A stretch of 63,273 bases of DNA, counting the filler, from Perkinsus chesapeaki ATCC PRA-425 (lineage: Eukaryota; Protista; Perkinsozoa): the NCBI GenBank assembly GCA_013115145.1. It is 8 parts of 8 records of this genome, joined end to end, with 100 filler letters (N's around TTAATTAATTAA, not from the genome) between each part and the next. Parts side by side here need not be neighbours in the genome. Positions count along the whole stretch, not along the records: positions 5,809 to 32,589 come from JAAPAO010000502.1; 7 more parts are not named here. The stretch is one strand, 5' to 3'. The translations under genes and the position numbers were made by a program. Of the stretch, positions 5,809 to 25,682 are shown in pieces (position 1 is the stretch's first letter; each line of letters starts with the position of its first letter). The notes beneath the pieces were generated by a model that did no database searches, had not been told where the DNA came from, and was given only the letters and a program-made list of their open reading frames with translations.

Positions 5809-5880
5809 CCGAGTGGTTAAGGCGGCGGCCTGCTAAGCCGTTGGGCTCTGCCCGCGAGGGTTCGAATCCCCCAGGTGTCG
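5809..5880 (+). tRNA. tRNA-Ser(GCT), 5' end lost in the gap
   Basis: A-box remnant CCGAGTGGTTAAGGCG, anticodon arm GCGGC-CTGCTAA-GCCGT, long variable arm TGGGCTCTGCCCG, T-loop GGTTCGAATCC, 3' acceptor strand GGTGTCG, then TTTT at 5885-5888. Confidence 0.92.
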
Positions 5881-9995: not shown

Positions 9996-11033
9996 TCAAT
10001 GATGTTTTGCCAACTCAATTGCTTGTTTAACAGCAAGATCAGGTCGAAGGACGCCATACAGCATTTCCACTCCCTTTACTGTTCTCACTTTACCCTCAGT
10101 AGCATTCAATAATATTTCCTTTATCACATCTGGTTTGAATTTCTTGATACTTTGTATTAAAGCTGCTATGCCACCAACAATCGCAGTAGCACAAGAGGAG
10201 CCTCTGTTTTTCTTATACTGCCACTGACCACCTCCATGCCTTAGAATTGCTGATATGACTTCTGTACCAGGCACACCAAAGCTAGCCAACAGAGAAGCTT
10301 CAGACAACAGCAACGTAGGATCTGATGTTAATGTCGCAGCAACGCACAACACACCAGGCATAGCGTTCGCCAATGAACAGGGTAACTCGATCTCAGAAGG
10401 CCCGGTTGCAGTATTGTTGTTTGAAGCGGCAACGACAACGAAGCTACCTTGATTGACGGCCTTCGTGATCACCCTCTTGAGCATCGTGGACCTCTCCGGT
10501 GTAAATGGAGTACTAAAAGCGAACACTATAACCTCAGAATCCTTGGACTCGCTCGCTATCTCCCATCCTCTTTCCGTTTGCCAGACGGCAGCGGGTCCGT
10601 CGGGGAGAGCAACTAACCTAATCGGTCTTATCTTAACTCTATCAGCTATTCCAGTGATACCAATACCATTGTTGATTACTCCAGCGATAATACTAGTCAC
10701 CATCGTACCATGTCCTTGCGTGTCTTCGACTGATGGCACTGAAGAACCAGAAGCGTCCCGCCCTTTCAATAGTTTGCCCACGAGGTCAGGTTGCTGAGTA
10801 GCGACACCCGTGTCGATAACAGTGACGATGACATCTCTACGGGATAACCCGGACTCTCGGACCGCCCTCCAAGTCTCTTGGATATGCAATGCCTTGAATA
10901 GGGCTCTCTGATCCGAAAAGTAGGGGTCGTTGGGCGGGTATGGTAGTTGACCAAAGACGACCCGAGGCCCTCTGAAGGACAAAACTAGACACCAGTGTAA
11001 TATATACTTCGATAGTCTCGGAAGTGTTATCAT
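9996..11033 (-). CDS. Subtilisin-like serine protease (peptidase S8), intronless, probably secreted
   Basis: Catalytic triad motifs VIDTG (D), HGTMVTSII (H) and GSSCAT (S); oxyanion AASN; PNDP mature-domain start after a hydrophobic N-terminus. The ORF is open back to 11090; ATG at 11033 preferred. Confidence 0.93.
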   Translation of the reverse strand: MITLPRLSKYILHWCLVLSFRGPRVVFGQLPYPPNDPYFSDQRALFKALHIQETWRAVRESGLSRRDVIVTVIDTGVATQQPDLVGKLLKGRDASGSSVPSVEDTQGHGTMVTSIIAGVINNGIGITGIADRVKIRPIRLVALPDGPAAVWQTERGWEIASESKDSEVIVFAFSTPFTPERSTMLKRVITKAVNQGSFVVVAASNNNTATGPSEIELPCSLANAMPGVLCVAATLTSDPTLLLSEASLLASFGVPGTEVISAILRHGGGQWQYKKNRGSSCATAIVGGIAALIQSIKKFKPDVIKEILLNATEGKVRTVKGVEMLYGVLRPDLAVKQAIELAKHH

Positions 11034-14000
11034 ATCAGCGAAGACAGTCATTGAAATTTTACGAATATTCGTTAAACCTGATGGAATCAATCATATCGAT
11101 CTCCAAGAAACCTCGCCAATAACCAATTTCAGAAGATTTAAAATACACGACAGACTGTTTCGGAAAAAGAATCAAGAAGACTGGTCATTAAACGGTGATA
11201 GGCCATATGCCATTACCGAGAGGTAGGAGGGTTAAGTTTTTACCGGTAAGACCCGCGCACGGGTGAGGCGATGGCGAGTGATTAAAGAGTGTTCTTCTAT
11301 CCGCAAGCACATCTCTTAAGTTAAGCGCCGGGCAACCGTGGCGCGGCGCATCGCGACCTTGAGCGGCTAGTTCACTTGTGAGAAAACCAGGCCTGCAGTG
11401 AACGAACCCACAACAAACCGACAACAAGTAGAAGAAAAACCTCCAACGGCAGAGCGTGTCAGTTAGAGTTCCTGAGACAAGACTCGCTATACCGATGTCT
11501 TCAACAAATTAAAGGGAAAGGGGTAGACATCAGGCGCAGGGCAGCACGCAGTCCGGCGCACAGGTGGCGCAACCGCCAGCTGCTGCCCCGGACACTGCAA
11601 CCTGCGAATCCGCAACGGGAGTGCGGCAATACTCACGGCTTGCACTCGGTGGCTTATGTGGCGTTTACTAGAAACTTTTCGCAGCGACCGAACGAGTCTC
11701 CGTACACCTCAGAAGTTGACGCTCTGTTATTGGCCGCTCGCCCCACATTGCCAGCCTGCTGCCCGCATTGATGTCCACACTAATGTAGCTACCCAGTTAT
11801 CTATAATTCCTTTTGATCAGACACGTCAAAAGTCCTGAGAACGACTGTGAGTGAGACTCGAAGCGGTTCCGAAATTTTGCACGCGTGGAGCGAAACGGGT
11901 CACGCCACGCTAAGAATGACGGAAACAACCATTTCTCTGTGCGCCCTATTCACTGATGCCACATCAGGACTCAACTGTTGCCCCTGGCAAGGATATGTAC
12001 TATTCAAGACACAAGACTTCTTTTGGAGGCTCCAAATTGGAACAACACGCTCTCATAACGATCACTAATCCCAGTCCTTGCCACGACATTGGAGTCAATC
12101 ACTGTGGCCCTTAAGAATCCAATGGGGATCGCGCGACGCGATTGGCGCCATGTACATAGCTATTGCAAGTTGCAACTGATCTGTTTACTGGATGTATTGA
12201 TACGTTTCGTGTTTCGTAGTTTCCGCAGCAGAAAGTGAAAAATTCGAAATATCATATTATATTTTGGCAGGCTGTATTGATGGGGAGGTCGGATGGGGTT
12301 TACTAATACCGCCAACCTTATCGCCGCCTCTCGCCGCACCTTATCGTACTAGTCGACCCTGTAGTCCGTGCCCTGACTGTGCTCCCGGTTACTTCAGTGG
12401 AGGTTTGGAGTCTTCCTCTCCCAGCTAAACATACAGTACCGCATAGTTCCTCCTTCGAGGCTCGAAGCTCGAGCCCAATGTTGCTCATTAAAATAGAATA
12501 TTCGTAGTCAAAGTGAATTTCCTATAGGCCGGAGGATGCACCGGCCTGAAGGGAGCGCCAATGTTTTTCGCGTGTTCTGGACCAGAACTTCTGGTAGTCC
12601 GCATCAGATACGTTTCTGTTTGCAAACAGATTCTGTTTCTGTTATTTGTCTGGACAGGGTCACCCCGTCCGGCTGACAGAGGGGCCCAGAAGAGCGTCAG
12701 GGTAGGGTCGTTTCCCTTAGAATGACGCGGAGGTTTTCGGTCGAAAACTGGTAGGAAATCCCCAGTTCCCAAGAATTCTTTGCGAAGTACCTGGTTCTCG
12801 AATTCCTACCCGGAAATTTCCTGGAAATGGCGTTGAGAAATTAACTGTGTAAACCCCGCGCATGCGCATCGATCCTGTTTAACAGTTCTTCGTAAATTCC
12901 CATGACGGTCTTCTCTGATATGATAGCACGTCCGAGACTGTTGCAGTATATAACTGTGTGAGGTACTCACACAATTCCTGTCTATCGCACAATTGTCGTA
13001 CCATGGCATTACTAGCTTTCTTTACTCCTGATATTCTACTCATTACTCACTCTGTTCACTACCCTATCTCGTTGAGTCAACGACGTTAACTATGAGCCCA
13101 ATCTATAATTGTTGTGTTACGACTACGCCATCTGAGATAGCGAGTGAGCGAGTGGAAACTTTTCACTCGTTCAGTGCCATTCCGTACAGTCGCAACTGGT
13201 TCAGTGTCGCATCGTGTAGCTCCTGTACAGAGAAATTTCGTACACGTCGCGTTTTGCGCGAACAGGTAGTAGCTGACCCACTAGTGCTCGATTGTGATTT
13301 GTAGGCTTTTACGTGCTTCCTCCGGGGATTGATCCGAAGTCGCCTGCATGGCAAATAAGAAATACAACCACTAAAGCACAACGGCTGGGTCACGACGGTG
13401 GTTACGTAACGCAACATGCCTAGCATTGTGTGTGCCACAACTGACACATGTTGGGTTTTATTGAAGCCTCGTAATGGCTGCAAGTTGCAGCCTGCAACAG
13501 TGTTGCGGTTCTGCAGCAACACCTCGCGAAGCCCTACTTGTATTTGAGATCGAGCATAATCCACCTAGCGCTAGCGAAGATGTGGTAATTACATGTCAGA
13601 GGATGGTCTGATGCTGGTGAAGGCATCGATTATGAAAGACCTCAAAAAAGGGGGTGGTGCTTGCTCATTGAAGACGCATTCGTTAGCTGTTTGCGTGGTA
13701 AAAAAGCTAGATGCAGGAGCCTCTGTCGTACCGACGAACTGTCAATGACTCGGCTCAACAATCGTGGCATACTCAGAACTCTGCCCGTTATAGTTCACTG
13801 AAACATTCCCATAACGAGCTTGAAACGAGACAATTCACATGATTCCACCCCATCCTCCGCATAGGGCACTCCATCGACTTCGAAGTTTCGCTACCGGAAT
13901 ACCAGTAACCTCCGACATCAGCTCGTATCGTTCATCCTCGAGATAACTGAACAAGAGCATAAGGTGTGATCAATCTCGCCAGTGTTCGAGATTAACGACA

Positions 14001-14254: not shown

Positions 14255-17200
14255 TCATGAAAACGTACAAGCGTCGACTCTCATGTCCCTTAAAGATTCA
14301 AAAGCGTCGTTTGCATATAATAGAAAATCCCATTGGAGTGAAATACATCATCAACAATTCCGAGCTAATGGGGATGTTCTCACTTGTCGGACCATCTCTC
14401 AACCTCACGAGCCATCATCCGTGGATCGTGATCGAGCCCTGTTTTCGGATCGTAGTCAGGATGATAACTACCACAAACCACACTTGCATACCGAAAGTGA
14501 CGTTACAAAGCACTCACACTCTCAACAAAGGATGCGCTGATAGGGGCAGATCCGACCGCTCAGCTGGAGCGAAGTATCTAATCAAACAACTTTCATGTGC
14601 CTTGAAAGATGATGGATACTCGCTCTTGGTATCCGGCAACTTGAAGAACATCGAAGACCAAGATGAGTCTCTCACTGCCAGGACATCCTCGTGTTCAAAC
14701 CAATCTGGCATCTCTACATCATTTGCTCCTTCTGAGTTTGCATGTTGATCGAACACTGATTGTCAGTGACAGACTGTGAATCGCATAAACCTACTCTGCT
14801 TGAAATACAACCCACGCACCAGTTCAGGCCTCATCAAGAACCTCAATAACACCCTCCACTCCTCTTGCATTATCTCTATCATCGCCTAATAACAAAAACA
14901 TATCACCAGTGGTGATTCACCACACAACAACAAAAACAGACTTACGGGTCGAATAACGTATCGTTGATAGAGATCTGGGTCACTTAGCGCTTTCTCAACC
15001 TGAGCGGCTTTCTCGGCGTTCCCATGCGTGCCGGTTGCTCCAAACTGATAGTGCCTAGAAATCATTCAATTGCCCCAATGCTGCGTTATCAGCCTACACG
15101 GCGTTGGTGGCTCTCTCGATGTGTTTGCGTGCACGATTAATCAGTTGATGAGTGACGTGGGATGCTAATGGTGAGCCTCGACCAATGTTATCAATGGTCC
15201 TCGATGCGAAGTCGCGAACATCATCCGGCAGTGAAGCTGAGGAACAGCCAACGCTGTTTGGCAAAGAATAACACGGCAATATCCACAGGGCGTGTGGTGT
15301 AGTGGTATCACGTCTGCTTTGCATGCAGAAGGCCCCGGGTTCAAACCCCGGCACGTCCATTTTTCAGCCATCCGCTCAAGATACTTACGATCGTCTCTAT
15401 GAGTCACGAGACTCTCCACAACATCAAACAAGTGCGGCTGGGAGAAACACTTCTGAATGAGACCGATGTAGGGTGCCAGCGACCACCTGATCACATCCAG
15501 GAACACTTCCGGAAGGAACAACGTTTGATCTTTATTCTCGCTTTATCTCTTGTAGGAACCAACCTTGTTAAAATATTTCTGTCATATTCGTATTAATATT
15601 CGTTCACATTGAGAACACCGTATCTCGGCTGTAAATGCGGCTGTAATATGTAAATCTTCCCATTGCATTGGAGTGTGTAATGCAATGTAAGTATGCATGT
15701 GTATTTTACAATTTAATTTTGAAAAAAATGTTTCACTTGCGGAGCCACAACGTCATACCGATTTCTTCAACAACAAACGCCCTGACGTACCCTTCTGGCA
15801 AATCCAAAAAGTGTTCCGATATTAGGGCTTTACCATCACTCTCACTCACCTAACAATTACACATCACCACACAGCATCCAGCACCCGGCTGCTGCTCACC
15901 TCCAGCTGCTTCTCACTCGTCACTTCTAACAATCTGAATGCATCCGGAGATATCCAGTTTTTAGCCAAGCCTACTCACGCACGACTCGGCATTATTACTT
16001 CTTAATAACTCACCGCAATACACAATATCTTGGCCTTTCACAACCTCTCCGGTAAGAGCAAGATAGTTACCGATACAAAACGGCAACCGAGCAAGCAAAA
16101 ACGACGCTCCCGCTACCTAAATCGATCATCCCACACTAAAAGATACGCTTTTACGCACTGGAAAGAATCCGTAGCGAGTTTGGTCGAACCTCACGGCGCT
16201 GTGATGATACGCTCCACTATATTCGCTCGACAAGCCACACCAGGCTGCAGCTGCATTCGTCACTTCGCCGTTGTATAGAGTCACCAAAGGCTTATGATAT
16301 TCCGCAACCATCAGACTGAGATCGAATCTGAACAAGGTGAGGATGATATAGTTATGATGCCCAAGCAGGGCTCCCCATGAACTTAATAACATATAAATAT
16401 TTTGTACGATTGTAACTCCGTTTCTCATTGTTATAAAAAGCTCGATGAAGTTTGTTTGTGTTCCTCCACACTCTTCACTTCTATGCACAGGAGCCCCTAT
16501 TCCAAAGGCAATAGAAGGGAAACTTTCCAAGTACATATTGATCGACACCAGTCGCCGCCCGGACACGGAGAACAGTTCTCCTACGTAGGATTAGGTAGGG
16601 ATAGCTAATGATGCTTCAACGATTATGGCCGATCCTGTATAACCGTAAATGAGTAAATGTAAAAAAATACGACTTCGACGCACTGTGAAGATTTTCAAAA
16701 AATATTCACGTAGTTTTTCGAACTCCAAATGTCATAACTATTTAAAAATAGACAACTTGACAACAAATATTTATTTTTAATGTGATTTATTGTATTGATA
16801 ATGTAATGAGAATGATATACAATATACCGAATCCTGATGATACTCATATTGATAATAATATTACTATTATATATTCTACTACTTTTATTACCATCATTCT
16901 AATACTCATATTCAGATATAGCACCTATAAAGCCTTACGCCATTTTCTTTTATTTTTATAGCGCCGCCCCTTCGTTTACCCCTCCCTGTTTACGCGATAG
17001 ACACCCCTCTCTGTGGTATTACAGATTCTTAAAGTACTCCAGTGCATATCTAGGTATCTCATTCCGGTACTGTGACGCCTGAAATAGTAAAAAATCGTCA
17101 CGGAGAATATGCAAGGTTCATAAAGCCCAACGAAGGTGTGAAGATATGCTTATAGCTCTTAAAGCCATGACGATTGAAGGTTCAAGCGTGTCATAAAATA

Positions 17201-18719: not shown

Positions 18720-19954
18720 TCCATTTAGCATTATAAAATAAACTGTCAATCGAGTGGTGACGCTAACTCAGCAAGGAAGAGGGACTCAAACGGCTGGGGG
18801 GGGCTTTATACTGTATAAAGCGTCCCATCCTTTGGATTATATAAATCATACAAAGTGGATCCAGCCAGCCGACCGTTTCACAAGTATCTTGACAGACGAC
18901 TTGGCAATAGATGAAGTATGCGCACTGTGAATATCAGCTTCATATCCACAACAAGAATAACACTTTAGACGGAATCTTGAGACGGCGGCGACCATCGAGG
19001 AAATGAGATATCAGATTTCAAAACCAACTTGTTAATCTGCGCCATCAAAAATACTTGAAATTTACTCTCCAATCTACTGTGTCGATGAGATATCCCGCAC
19101 TGTGTATGTTGCAACACGCATTTCATCAATACGTTAACCGTCGCTGTTAAATGGCTGCTTCTCTACCGATCACCAACGCCCTTAGTTTATAGGTTGCTTG
19201 AAAGATAATCGAAGACTGGTGTGACCATACTACCCTTATCAGTATTTATAGCACAACCTCATGAGAGAGATAACGGTGATGCCTCCATCGACTTCATCGC
19301 CTACCTGCCGGAGAGTCTGCTGTTAACGAGAGCTCCTTGTCCTTATATACATATAATGCAGCCCAGCAAGTAAAGATGACGCCTACAATTTCCAGCAATT
19401 TCTGTGGTAATTGATACTAGCACTACGGGAAGCGGCCCAAAAGTCTGAATCTTTCAAACACAGTGGTTGTTGACTTTCATAGTTATTCGATTTTTGCTCA
19501 GACTTAGGGCGAATGAATCGATTCTTGTTCTTAGTCCCCGCACCGATAGAATGTTTCTCAGTTTTAGATATCTGTCAAAATCGAACACACTGTAGATACT
19601 AATAAAACCAATCAACTACCGAATTCATGTCATCTCGTCTGACACTGTTATACCTCGACCACCGACATCTTCAATAGGAGAATGTTTTCGTACTTCGTCA
19701 CAGTGTCCAATATTGAATGAACTCAATAAGATACTAACTCATAACAGAAACTTGCCAGCACTAACATGCTCTCCATCTTCATAGAATACTCAGCGTCACG
19801 CGCCACGAAATTACTTGTCATTTTATGATACTATTTGATCTGTGTACACTTTCTAAGATAAACATTTGTATACGATTTTCATGTAAGAATAAAAAATGGC
19901 AATTAACCTGACGAAAAAGCCAATTCTCACGCGCCACAAAAATATTCTTCTTAC

Positions 19955-21015
19955 CAGACCAGCTATGGAGTCTTCAACCTTAGATTCGTCAACATCTCCC
20001 GAACACATTCCTCCCACTGAGGATGATTCCCCAACGACTCCTGCTACAGCACGTCTGACGAGAATGAAGATATTTTATGGTATAGGGCGGGCTTGAAAAT
20101 AATAACAAGTAGAATAATCAGATTCGTTTTGGTATAGTCTATGATGAAGTATGATATTTTGTCATGCCTATACTATAGACATGACAAAATACAATACGGA
20201 AAGGTGCGAACAAGTCAAAGAGTAGGATTCTTATAAAAGGAAAATAATAAAAGTGAATGTCAAATAAAAAGACTCGGCAAAATTCCAGTGCAAAAATGAT
20301 AACTGAATATCATACAGAAAGACTTTTGAAAAAGTTCTCGAGTGAGAGATGATAAAATATAAAAATTGAATGTATGAGCACAAGCTTACCGAACTTGCTC
20401 GGGGAATCCCGAGATCGGCGCTTCACCAACAATCCTCGGCAAGGAAACTGAGGACGCCATCGATCGGCTGAAATTGGCATTATACCTGAAAGATAGGGCA
20501 AAAGGACGAAAGAGCATTCAGGTATATTCCACACACTGAAGGATAAAGTAGGTCATTTAAGTACGTCTAAAAAGACTGCGAAGTGCTGTCGATGGAGTCC
20601 ACATGAAATTTAGAATCTATAATTTTCTTTCATCACCCTCATCTGCGGGAATGTCAACGGTATGCCACTAATCAAGGCTCAGAGGTTTGTGAGCATATGC
20701 CGCATACTGAAGCATAGAGATAACAAAGTAGATAGAGTAAACATTTCTTATATAAAAGGACAGCGAAGTCCTGTTGTAAAAGTATTATATAAATATATTT
20801 CATAAATCGCAATAATGGATACGACCGGATTCACTCAGAGATGAGGTTACATAATAACATACAAATTCAATACTCAATACAGACAGTGACCAACATCGAT
20901 AAGCATCTTCGGACATCTGCCGCACTCACGCCTTTGCCCAAGATGACGCCCCTCTTGCTTTAGCAAATCTAACTCCAGCTTGGAAGCCTTTGGATGCAAA
21001 CCGTCCAGTAGGCAT
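19955..21015 (-). CDS. Small-gene family copy F (unknown function)
   Basis: Exons 21015-20930, 20485-20390 and 20054-19955 splice to MPTGRFASKGFQAGVRFAKARGASSWAKAYNANFSRSMASSVSLPRIVGEAPISGFPEQVRRAVAGVVGESSSVGGMCSGDVDESKVEDSIAGL. Last exon not resolved. Confidence 0.8.
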
Positions 21016-21460
21016 AAATAAAACAACAACTAAACCTAGTGATGGAATAAATCAATATATAATCGACTTTTCTTTAGCAACTGAATACAAGCAGCAGACA
21101 ATCCTAAACGGACTGAAGTTGATATGCTTCCACAAAACCGACACAACTTCAACACCCCCAACGCGAACAAGTCAAGCGATCAGAAACATGTCATAATTCA
21201 CCTTATACCAAACCACAACTTGTTTGAATAGCTAGTTGACTTACTATGTTCAATAGAATACAATGGCATTCAACTAGTTATTATTGTTATCGATAGATAA
21301 GGATGTTGTTAATATTTTGGATGATAATTGAAATGCCTGAAGCGAATACACAGCAGACGTGACATAATATCAGATTATTCAACGATCTTTTTAATAAGCC
21401 CTAGTTTTAACTCATCTATAATATTAACTCAAAGTACAGGACAATCGACATAATTCTTAC

Positions 21461-22129
21461 TAAAGCAATCATTTCTTCCAGCTCATCTTCGGGAATGGTC
21501 TTCGCCGCACAACCCCCAGCAGACGTCATCTCGCTTGAAATACTCATAGATATCATAGGTCTAATTAGGCTCCAGAATCGATCACGTGATCGATTTGGGA
21601 ATCTTACGGTATTTGCTCTGCAAATCCCTGCAATGGAGCCTCCCCAACTATTCGAGGTAGGGTACCCAAAGTTGAGACCGATCGAGCGAAGTTAGCGTTA
21701 TACCTGACAAATGGTAAAATTGAACACACAGTATAATAACCAATAATAGAAAGAGGATACAGCTGCAAGTAGTAATGACGGGCTACGCAGAGAAAAGACG
21801 ATAAGATAATAATAAATAGGAGTGATATTCAAACAAGGCCAACGGGGTATCTATTATATCACAAGCAACCTGGATGATACATGAAAAAATAAATGATGGA
21901 AAATATAAAATAAAATGTACAGAAATATATAATGTTCAGGTGATATAGAATCCAGTATGCTTCCAAGAAGATCGAATAATACGAAATGAAGCTCAACTGT
22001 GACCCTCATCATGAGTCAACGACAGACATGAGAAGGATCTAATTCTACTTACGCTCGCGCGAACGATGATGTCCCTCTGGCACGGGCAAAGCGAGCTCCG
22101 GCCGACATACCTCTTGAACAGAAGGTCAT
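21461..22129 (-). CDS. Small-gene family copy E (unknown function)
   Basis: Exons 22129-22053, 21703-21608 and 21560-21461 give MTFCSRGMSAGARFARARGTSSFARAYNANFARSVSTLGTLPRIVGEAPLQGFAEQIPPMISMSISSEMTSAGGCAAKTIPEDELEEMIAL. Exon 2 (96 nt) and exon 3 (100 nt) match copy F in length. Confidence 0.8.
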
Positions 22130-22393
22130 CGGGAATAAAACAAAAGCGGAAACAGTTGAAGCGAAATAACACGATAGAGTAATAAATATACGGAAACAAA
22201 GTTCATGAGGATAGGCATCGAACTGACCTATTTTGTATCTTACTTGCCCAACCTAAAAGATATGCGTAGTTATTCTGTGTATTATTATTAACTTACTCTT
22301 TGCTCCATGAGCTAATACCACCACCCAAAAATGATATAATATTCCATGAAACCAACTGATATATAATAATAAATTATATATATTATTATTTAC

Positions 22394-22676
22394 CTGTTCT
22401 TCAGTTACATTATCAAGATCAATACCATCTATTGGACTTGAATCAGATCCAGTCATAGCTTGACCAACAATCAATTCACCACCTCGATGTTGTTCGGCAA
22501 ATCCTTCTCTTGGGCATTCACCAGTTTGTAATAGAATCTTTCTACTTGCCGATGAGAAGCATCGATTATATCTAGATAATAAATAATTAATAATTAATAT
22601 AAATAACTTACTCATCTGCCCATAATGATATCCCTCTAGCACGAGCGAACCTTACAATATGATTACTACGACGCAT
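22394..22676 (-). CDS. Small-gene family copy D (near-identical to copy B)
   Basis: Exons 22676-22612 and 22571-22394 give MRRSNHIVRFARARGISLWADEYNRCFSSASRKILLQTGECPREGFAEQHRGGELIVGQAMTGSDSSPIDGIDLDNVTEEQ. Confidence 0.75.
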
Positions 22677-23681
22677 TAACACTTCAACATCTATAAGAAT
22701 TAATTGAGAAAACTGAACCAAACAAAATCTGCAAAATAACCTCTGAAACCCATCATTAGTATTAACATTAGATATCTTCAAGCATTGAGATTTGACTGCG
22801 TGAGGCTCTTTCCATGCTATGAGCCTCACCAAGATCTGAAATGACATTATCAATGAACACACTTCAACGAGAAGTCGAGAAATGAAAGGTCTACAGGAAT
22901 ACGAAAAGATATCGAAAATGCGTATGGAGAAAGCTACTGAGTGCATATTAAAGGAGAGGTAAATCTCTATAACCAAGTCGTATTTCATATTATTAGAAAA
23001 AGTAAGATAGGAAAGTATGTCTAGAAAAATGATCCATTCCACTTCAACTTTAATTTTACAAACCAATGAAGGCTTTACGAAATCTCTGGCATATCTTCAA
23101 CGATTATTAAATGTAACAAGTAGTGGAGATGATGATGATGACTTACTCTGGTGGTACAGCGCCAACACCGGGACCAAAGCCAGTTATCATATTCCAACTC
23201 ACTATCTGACAGAATGATATATTCATAGATATGATAACATCGAGACAACGACAGAAAATGTAGAGTGGATGAAAAATTGGTAGGAATGAAAATCCGTAAT
23301 AATTATGAAGTTCATGTAAAAAAATTGAGAATAAAAATGCAATAAATGAAAAGAAGTAGGAATGTGACACAGTGGAAAGTAGACAGAAAAGCAGATGAAA
23401 TGGCATACAGTAGCAACGAACCAAAAGAATGAACAACGAATAAAAATGCGATGACATCTACGAAAATACCGATTCAACAATAGTAATCAAGCAGGAATAT
23501 GATAGAGTCGGAAGTGAACAGAAAAGCCAAAAGGATGGCATACAATACCAACAAACCATGATAGAGCGACCTCATAATAAACGAATGAAAATGCGATACC
23601 ATCTACGAAAATACCGATTAAACTATTCGTAATAGTTCAACCACACCATTTTGGAATACAAAACATGTTAAATCGTCCTAC

Positions 23682-24483
23682 TTGTTCATCAGTCAAATCC
23701 TCCATATCAACACCATCCATAATACTACTATCCGATCCGGATAAAGCTTGACCCATGATCAGTTCACCACCCCTAAAGGCAAAACTTTTATTTCATATCT
23801 ACCAGAAAAAAACCTTACAAAATAGAAAAATAACGCTATATTTCCTACGTCAGAATTAGCCCTAAAAAGCAAAATGTTTATAATAGCAATTGCAATTCTT
23901 CGGCGGATATCTCGTAGAGCACATACGAGCCGAGTCGATCGGTTGGATACGATATTGACGTGATTGATCGATAACAAAATTTATTAAGAACTTGTGATAG
24001 TCGGTGAGGTATGAATATTCACAATAAAATTCCACTGCAAGATTGAAAGCACGCAATGGTAGACTATAATTTCGAAATTGGATTGTATTCCGTATTTCAC
24101 CATGAAAAATACAATTCGATGTTCATACAAGTAAAACTATCACTTCTTAAGGTCCAAACTTCGTATAAAAATTTTCCTATGAAATCCATCACGGCAGCAT
24201 CTTTTGAACTTCCAATCAATAGCAAATCGGACATAAGACCAATAACATTTTTCAGGCGTAAATAGAGCGGGCTAACCATTGCTTACCTGCGTTGTTCAGC
24301 AAAGCCCTGAGCCGGACTTTCGCCCATCACAGCGACCACATTACGACTGACGACTGCGGTGAAGCAACGATTATATCTGGGTAAAAAATTCACGACATGA
24401 TACGGAGTAAATGCTCACTCTGTAGCCCAGGCAGATGTCCCTCTAGCACGAGCGAAACGAACAAATTGATTGCCGCGGCCCAT
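23682..24483 (-). CDS. Small-gene family copy C (unknown function)
   Basis: Three exons (third at 23772-23682) give MGRGNQFVRFARARGTSAWATEYNRCFTAVVSRNVVAVMGESPAQGFAEQRRGGELIMGQALSGSDSSIMDGVDMEDLTDEQ. Confidence 0.78.
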
Positions 24484-24756
24484 AGAAAATAAAAAGCTGA
24501 AATCGACAAAGCCGGGATGAAACCGAACAAATAAAGGATGTTTCTGAAACATTATGAACCATCTATGAACATGGAGGGTGCCAAGTTAACCTATTTTGTA
24601 TCTTACTTGCCCAACCTAAAAGATATGCGTAGTTATTCTGTGTATTATTATCAACTTACTCTTTGCTCCATGAGCTAATACCACCACCCAAAAATGATAT
24701 AATATTCCATGAAACCAACTGATATATAATAATAAATTATATATATTATTATTTAC

Positions 24757-25039
24757 CTGTTCTTCAGTTACATTATCAAGATCAATACCATCTATTGGAC
24801 TTGAATCAGATCCAGTCATAGCTTGAGCAACAATCAATTCACCACCTCGATGTTGCTCGGCAAATCCTTCTCTTGGGCATTCACCAGTTTGTAATAAAAT
24901 CTTTCTACTTGCCGATGAGAAACATCGATTATATCTAAATAATAAATAATCAATAATTAATATAAATAACTTACTCATCTGCCCATAATGATATCCCTCT
25001 AGCACGAGCGAACCTTACAATATGATTACTACGACGCAT
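24757..25039 (-). CDS. Small-gene family copy B (unknown function)
   Basis: Same two-exon structure and protein as copy D apart from a few substitutions. Confidence 0.75.
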
Positions 25040-25306
25040 TAACACTTCAACATCTATAAGAAAATAACAAAGCGAAAACAAACGCATACCAACACTTAAC
25101 CACGGAAACTGAGCAAATGCATATTCTCATGACAACCAATGGCTTTATAGCCTCACGATTAGAAGGAAATATGGTATTATTAATATCTTCTTTTATTATT
25201 GAATATTTCGTCAATATGTACCATATATGTAATTATTGCTTGATTGCTTGATTGATAAATAATCTAACCAAAATAAGTTCTACGTGCAGCAAGTCCCGAA
25301 TCTTAC

Positions 25307-25682
25307 TGTCTGAAGGAGCTCGGCGGTCTCCTCTAGAGCTTCAAGCGTCAATAGCGATACAGAACCTGCTGGGCCGAGCAGTTCTTGATTACCACCAGCT
25401 TGAATAAAAGATGCCGACCTGAAAAGATACGCTCAAGTTGACCTATAAAATATCTTTCTTTTTACCTCATTTGTTCCGCATAACCCTGTATTGGAGATTC
25501 CCCACATAAACGTGGAAGGGCTGCACAAGTGACCGATCTAGAAAAATTTGCATTGTACCTGACAAAGCGTATCTTTAGGTCGGATTGACATAAAGTGCAA
25601 CCTACGCCTTAGCCCAGACACTTGCCCCTCGAGCCTTGGCAAAGCGAGCACCTGCGTGGAGGCCTCGAGAAAAGGTCCCCAT
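25307..25682 (-). CDS. Small-gene family copy A (unknown function)
   Basis: Exons 25682-25606, 25558-25466 and 25418-25307 give MGTFSRGLHAGARFAKARGASVWAKAYNANFSRSVTCAALPRLCGESPIQGYAEQMRSASFIQAGGNQELLGPAGSVSLLTLEALEETAELLQT. Confidence 0.8.

Follow-up and report, generated by a model that had tools for sequence, protein, structure and literature searches.

What is encoded by a run of short, motif-bearing reading frames that follow one another on one strand of a contig of the protist Perkinsus chesapeaki ATCC PRA-425? The stretch of DNA analysed, here called the window, comprises 63,273 nucleotides, filler included, and joins eight parts of assembly GCA_013115145.1 end to end. The array in question lies at window positions 25682-19818 on the minus strand, within the 26.8-kb piece that comes from JAAPAO010000502.1. 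An initial annotation had proposed six small paralogous genes of an unrecognised protein family, acting in a heteromeric or co-polymerising system or joined in one spliced repeat polyprotein. The explanation that best covers the observations is that these are six separately translated, cis-spliced genes of a family known so far from Perkinsus alone, whose products would work by a common docking mechanism; we put its probability at roughly three in four. What concerns the gene family and the separateness of its genes can be stated with high confidence, and the functional part is much more tentative.

Are the genes complete? When phases, split codons and stops were followed exon by exon, six full reading frames were obtained, arranged head to tail in the order A-B-C-D-E-F (Table 1). 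The six minus-strand starts and both motif blocks are present where the initial annotation had placed them, and its division into two subtypes, YNANF (A, E, F) and YNRCF (B, C, D), and its gene order stand as well. Its figure of 80-100 amino acids (aa) for the resolved part has to be raised, as the full genes have four exons, or five in the case of C, and encode 104-123 aa; its lower limit of 19955 for the array also has to be moved, as the last exon of F lies beyond it. All 19 introns have GT-AG borders and measure 38-514 bp, which fits the published range for Perkinsus introns, 39-1622 bp and mostly less than 100 bp (PMC3101222). The phase-2 intron said to precede YN at the same position is a GT-AG intron found in every copy (6/6): exon 1 ends two bases into a codon at the GT, and the frame is restored by the AG that precedes the YN exon. 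The last exon is a 13-bp mini-exon in B and D (LGK and stop) and a 10-bp mini-exon in C (SW and stop).

Table 1. Features of the window described in the text. Exons are listed in the direction of transcription, the first coordinate of each gene being that of its start codon; L001 is the compared Perkinsus marinus locus.
Feature	Window position	Strand	Product	Exons	Subtype	P. marinus counterpart	Remarks
Gene A	25180..25682	-	121 aa	25682-25606, 25558-25466, 25418-25307, 25263-25180	YNANF	L001:9344-9900	stop TAA
Gene B	24603..25039	-	104 aa	25039-24975, 24934-24757, 24718-24660, 24615-24603	YNRCF	P0001	
Gene C	22826..24483	-	104 aa	24483-24419, 24376-24287, 23772-23682, 23205-23147, 22835-22826	YNRCF	P0010, P0013	
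Gene D	22240..22676	-	104 aa	22676-22612, 22571-22394, 22355-22297, 22252-22240	YNRCF	decayed relic	structure as B
Gene E	21274..22129	-	111 aa	22129-22053, 21703-21608, 21560-21461, 21336-21274	YNANF	L001:11846-12357	
Gene F	19818..21015	-	123 aa	21015-20930, 20485-20390, 20054-19955, 19907-19818	YNANF	L001:12659-13778	
Tract of B shared with D	24589..25062	-					
Tract of D shared with B	22226-22699	-					
Direct repeat in intron 3-4 of C	23626-23489 and 23481-23354						intron of 476 bp
Conserved coding region	27164-26384	-				L001:7843-8938	directly upstream of A
tRNA-Ala (TGC)	15288-15359	+					68 bits in Rfam
Subtilase family open reading frame	9996-11090	-	364 aa				intron-free
Partial tRNA match	5809-5880						at piece edge

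Could the motifs nevertheless be chance fragments of open reading frames (ORFs), or decayed repeats, as single exons too short for an ORF list with a 60-aa minimum might suggest? In the six array copies exon 1 encodes a basic peptide, R-F-A-[KR]-A-R-G-x-S-x-[WF]-A, and exon 2 starts with Y-N-x-x-F and ends with G-E-x-P-x-x-G-[FY]-[AP]-E-Q. Each of the two patterns occurs six times in the 26.8-kb piece, against a mean of 0 in 300 triplet shuffles of it. Selection was measured as nonsynonymous and synonymous differences (pN and pS) between the window genes and their P. marinus orthologues. Per gene, pS is 0.63-0.81, which is saturated, and pN 0.05-0.15, with pN/pS about 0.1; saturated pS together with low pN shows that purifying selection acts on the genes. 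Pooled by exon class (exons 1-4), pN is 0.14, 0.13, 0.11 and 0.06 and pS 0.74, 0.84, 0.76 and 0.55, so that every part of the proteins is constrained at the protein level. The earlier claim of selection is borne out by these values; its description of the copies as diverged does not hold for B and D, which are nearly identical. With selection, transcript ORFs and complete spliced frames all speaking against it, the reading as chance fragments or decayed repeats is refuted, and its probability is practically nil.

The last large exons (the fourth of A, C, E and F and the third of B) behave differently from the rest. Between paralogues they are unlike (identity 0.10-0.37, vs 0.38-0.69 in exons 1-2), yet between orthologues they are the best-conserved part. 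Their pooled pS is also lower than that of exons 1-3; this may reflect an extra constraint at the nucleotide level or an AT-rich codon usage.

Transcript evidence comes from ORFs of MMETSP transcripts, three of which are relevant. P0013 is a complete 104-aa ORF equal to P. marinus C, including its ECW end, and P0001, the 104-aa sequence of P. marinus B ending in LGK, is likewise found as a transcript ORF. P0012 corresponds to exons 2-5 of window gene C and shares the stop of that gene (ESW); residues 9-87 of this ORF are identical to exons 2-4, and the ESW end is as the fifth exon predicts. Spliced transcripts, whose absence for every copy would have spoken against the genes, are present for B and C. 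The genes of the array are real and conserved, with transcription evident for at least some of them.

Are the units translated singly or as one protein? A spliced repeat polyprotein could be made by skipping the terminal exon of one unit and the first exon of the next. Three Perkinsus olseni models do fuse neighbours, P0004 representing A+B, P0009 C+D and P0003 D+E+F, all joined in frame and with first exons dropped; the phase-2 donors that end the WSKE and PPE exons fit the phase-2 acceptors before YN, and the spacers from stop to next ATG within the array are very short (110-258 bp). Against this, every unit has kept its own ATG and in-frame stop in both the window species and P. marinus, and all three transcript ORFs are single units that include terminal mini-exons (LGK, ECW, ESW) and stops. 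There would be no reason for these mini-exons to be conserved between species, as they are, if splicing always left them out, and the fused models omit conserved exon 1 sequence on which purifying selection acts. Single-unit transcript ORFs, a start and stop for each unit and conserved mini-exons lead us to regard the units as separate genes; the polyprotein suggested in the initial annotation is highly improbable. Since donors and acceptors share phase 2, neighbours can be joined in frame, and the fused P. olseni models look like prediction artefacts.

How far does the family extend? It can be defined by R-F-x-[KR]-A-R-G-x-S, a phase-2 intron, then Y-N ... G-E-x-P-x-x-G-x-x-E-Q, a combination present in the six window genes, in a copy elsewhere in the same assembly, in five P. 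marinus copies and in four P. olseni copies. All 13 sequences compared share seven residues in exon 1 (M, R, F, A, R, G, S) and eight in exon 2 (Y, N, G, E, P, G, E, Q). The copy elsewhere, a seventh paralogue (G), lies on contig C2951 (L010:4801-5600, plus strand) and was found by a profile search of the assembly covering 41.7 Mb in 3544 contigs, which also recovered all members of the array. It follows the four-exon plan of the array: the phase-2 intron precedes YNANF, the second intron is long, the third exon is acidic and the last exon resembles that of A. The family thus has at least one paralogue outside the array. A tRNA-like 3' half (GGTTCGATCCCGGG) lies about 250 bp downstream of the stop of this copy.

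Sequence searches and folding used single exons or database proteins as queries. No recognised domain had been claimed for the family, and none emerged. Single exons and full-length database orthologues (the scanned set being single exons, P0001, P0013, P0011, P0004:1-121 and parts of P0003) had no Pfam match at E up to 10, and at that limit there was no NCBIfam match for family members either. A sequence-profile search of the PDB gave unrelated enzymes and transporters with a best E of 0.23, and a feature search of the ESM Atlas scored no better than noise for P0001 (0.82) and gave nothing usable for the A type. A strong match to a characterised family is hence absent from Pfam, NCBIfam and the PDB. 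Word-based searches and a HMMER profile search of 1.84 billion representative proteins returned relatives in Perkinsus, in keeping with the earlier expectation of alveolate homologues; the other two matches, P0006 and P0007, are long repetitive proteins taken as low-complexity matches to a Ser/Asp/Gly linker. As far as can be detected, the family appears restricted to Perkinsus.

The small basic proteins of the SERF / 4F5 family (Pfam PF04419) offer a possible parallel. The start of SERF is resembled by the N-terminal M-x-R-G-N-Q/H of B, C and D. Membership was rejected, with no Pfam match at E up to 10 and no such N-terminus in A, E, F and G; the resemblance is probably fortuitous.

Is the array itself old? 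The comparison was made with L001 of P. marinus and, for P. olseni, with L011 and the contig that carries P0003. L001 carries A, B, C, E and F in array order, with a decayed relic of D between C and E: a B/D-like remnant at L001:11530-11710 that matches the DGIDLD..TEEQ exon at 86% over 36 nt. L011 carries A, B, C and a distinct D, and E and F are on the other P. olseni contig. In tblastx, window 27164-13835 is colinear with L001 7843-18054, including the flanks, an unnamed gene upstream and an ECH_2 (enoyl-CoA hydratase family) gene downstream. As the order is shared by three species, the six-position array is ancestral to the window species, P. marinus and P. olseni, and D has decayed in P. 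marinus.

Several of these genes are already in the databases. Window gene B is 83% identical to the 104-aa P. marinus protein P0001 (Pmar_PMAR019899, UniProt C5KBY5), which was found with the 59-residue second exon of B; P. marinus C is P0010 (Pmar_PMAR019898, C5KBY4), and the P. olseni entries are FOZ60_006582, FOZ63_003782 and FOZ63_003783. Direct orthology links these proteins to window B, C and A, whose exon plan and array order they share; all are unnamed 'hypothetical' entries that lack a Pfam domain. A full-text literature search by their accession numbers found no paper. The family, which is under selection, is an unrecognised one already present in databases as unnamed hypothetical proteins.

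Do annotation pipelines miss such genes, as the initial annotation supposed? In part they do: P. marinus has no models for A and F, and the P. olseni models are fused. B, C and E, on the other hand, are modelled in P. marinus, E as a 116-aa gene, although the C model P0010 stops two residues short of the transcript ORF P0013. The window gene structures agree with parts of the fused models, as residues 1 to about 118 of P0004 use the same four exons as gene A, and exons 2-3 of gene E agree with the E part of P0003.

Genes B and D have a history of their own. A self-comparison by blastn aligns a 474-bp tract of the two, with its introns, at 98.5% identity; the tract starts 23 bp before the ATG and ends 14 bp past the stop. 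In P. olseni, where D is a distinct copy at the same array position, the identity between B and D is 62% in exon 1 and 85-95% in exons 2-4. Identity of 98.5% that includes introns points to gene conversion, so that B and D, which are not adjacent, are best read as evolving in concert. The intron after AEQHR is absent from window B and D and kept in P. marinus B and in P. olseni B and D; its loss (intron 2) was probably spread between B and D by conversion in the window species.

Other sequence likenesses concern single exons and introns. The end of exon 3 of B and D (GISSWSKE) resembles the end of exon 1 (GISLWADE), and both are phase-2 with donor GTAAGT. Compared with shuffles, the resemblance has z ~4 and p ~0.002 for B, and there is none for C; the WSKE exon may be an old exon capture or the likeness may be chance. 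Exons 1 and 2 were also considered as an internal repeat, since MAFFT aligned RFARAR with GFAEQHR, and this was rejected at an hhalign probability of 0.24%. Intron 3-4 of gene C contains a direct repeat of ~135 bp with 74% identity.

What might the proteins do? Exons 1-2 encode a shared N-terminal module of ~55 residues that is basic and aromatic-rich. Exon 1 has a net charge of +3 to +6, a helical hydrophobic moment of 0.5-0.77 and, in A, E and F, no acidic residue; exon 2 combines aromatic residues with invariant Gly and Pro. An acidic linker with a net charge of -4 to -8, in which Ser, Gly and Asp abound, forms the middle part and is followed by a short hydrophobic or amphipathic C-terminal segment that differs in each paralogue. 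The array proteins have no signal peptide and no transmembrane segment (maximum KD15 1.46). By our own reading, the invariant Ser lies in [KR]-x-R-x-x-S, a basophilic-kinase consensus. Two other short signals were set aside: an LC3-interacting-type motif (an acidic stretch, then W-x-x-I) fits B, C and D and not the whole family, and N-myristoylation fails on a Met-Gly start that is not conserved across members.

This layout suggests a tentative picture, with perhaps a small chance of being right, of a shared docking module with paralogue-specific tails. The common N-terminal module would dock all members onto one shared partner, possibly a polyanionic surface (nucleic acid, acidic phospholipid) or a common protein. 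This docking might be regulated by a basophilic kinase acting at the invariant [KR]-x-R-x-x-S. The tails would give each member a distinct output or neighbour, and the set would act together. Short spacers and a common orientation suggest co-transcription; the array is predicted to be transcribed as a unit and then resolved by spliced-leader trans-splicing, a process established for Perkinsus (PMC3101222, PMC9399869). A more specific version, which we consider doubtful, has the seven paralogues as subunits of one Perkinsus-specific heteromeric assembly, where the N-terminal module would hold or dock the subunits, each would contribute a distinct C-terminal helix, and polycistronic expression would co-ordinate them.

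The same features can be interpreted otherwise. A basic exon 1 of high helical hydrophobic moment, free of acidic residues in A, E and F, in proteins that have neither signal peptide nor transmembrane segment, would suit a cleaved targeting peptide, with the acidic C-terminal half as the mature part of small organellar, probably mitochondrial proteins. Presequences, however, are normally free to vary, whereas here seven exon 1 and eight exon 2 residues are invariant in 13 sequences, pN in exons 1-2 is as low as 0.13-0.14 at saturated pS, and it is the tails that cannot be aligned between paralogues. An organellar role is unlikely. Might the genes instead encode host-interaction effectors, tandemly expanded as in many effector families? 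They are small, tandem and genus-restricted, and the organism is a mollusc parasite; on the other hand, the proteins have no signal peptide, orthology is strictly 1:1 with an almost constant copy number, and purifying selection is strong across species with different hosts. Such a role is very improbable.

Several points weigh against the preferred explanation, that of separate Perkinsus-only genes with a docking module. 'Perkinsus-only' amounts to 'none detectable': with a shared module of only ~55 residues, distant relatives would not reach significance, and perkinsozoan or dinoflagellate relatives of ~30% identity would miss E = 0.001 in a library of 1.8 billion. The transcript ORFs cover genes B and C and not A, D, E, F and G. 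P0012 begins MRLAWATE and over its residues 1-8 departs from exon 1 of gene C, the mismatch lying upstream of AWATE; an assembly chimera, an allele or an alternative 5' end could account for this start. AlphaFold2 produced no confident fold, with a predicted local distance difference test score (pLDDT) of 39.6 for P0001 (15 alignment rows) and of 36.0 for P0009, the fused C+D model that stood in for a heterodimer; with alignments as shallow as these, a low pLDDT shows neither order nor disorder. The functional picture, finally, derives from sequence features.

How does the locus compare with known arrays? Dinoflagellate tandem arrays expressed through spliced-leader trans-splicing, as in Amphidinium carterae (PMC2488372), likewise run head to tail in one orientation, and the Perkinsus array resembles them in its very short spacers and in belonging to a lineage that uses spliced-leader trans-splicing. 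The dinoflagellate arrays usually consist of many near-identical copies of one gene, whereas the six paralogues of the Perkinsus array are old and diverged, have separate orthologues and are rich in cis-introns.

Some neighbouring features were noted on the same piece (Table 1). The conserved coding region directly upstream of gene A has up to 77% aa identity to its P. marinus counterpart, carries no Pfam domain and has no gene call in P. marinus. The tRNA-Ala gene lies within the span of the ECH_2-like gene, on the opposite strand. The intron-free ORF of the subtilase family matches Pfam Peptidase_S8 with E = 1e-26, and a partial tRNA match lies at the edge of the piece.

What does the array mean for Perkinsus? 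The corrected gene models show that the locus is incomplete in P. marinus, where A and F are missing and C is truncated, and wrong in P. olseni, where genes are fused. As a case of genome evolution, the array exemplifies long-term retention of ordered paralogues, gene conversion between two non-adjacent members with intron loss, and loss of one member in one species. Protist genomes hold many orphan 'hypothetical' families, and with only a tentative function the wider significance of this one is modest for now. Perkinsus species are parasites of oysters and clams that cause major shellfish losses, and this orphan family, which is compact and conserved across the genus, is a candidate for biology specific to Perkinsus. 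If the heteromeric assembly proved true, the proteins would form a cellular structure or regulatory complex peculiar to the lineage, without equivalent elsewhere among the alveolates, and might serve as a specific marker or target for dermo disease.

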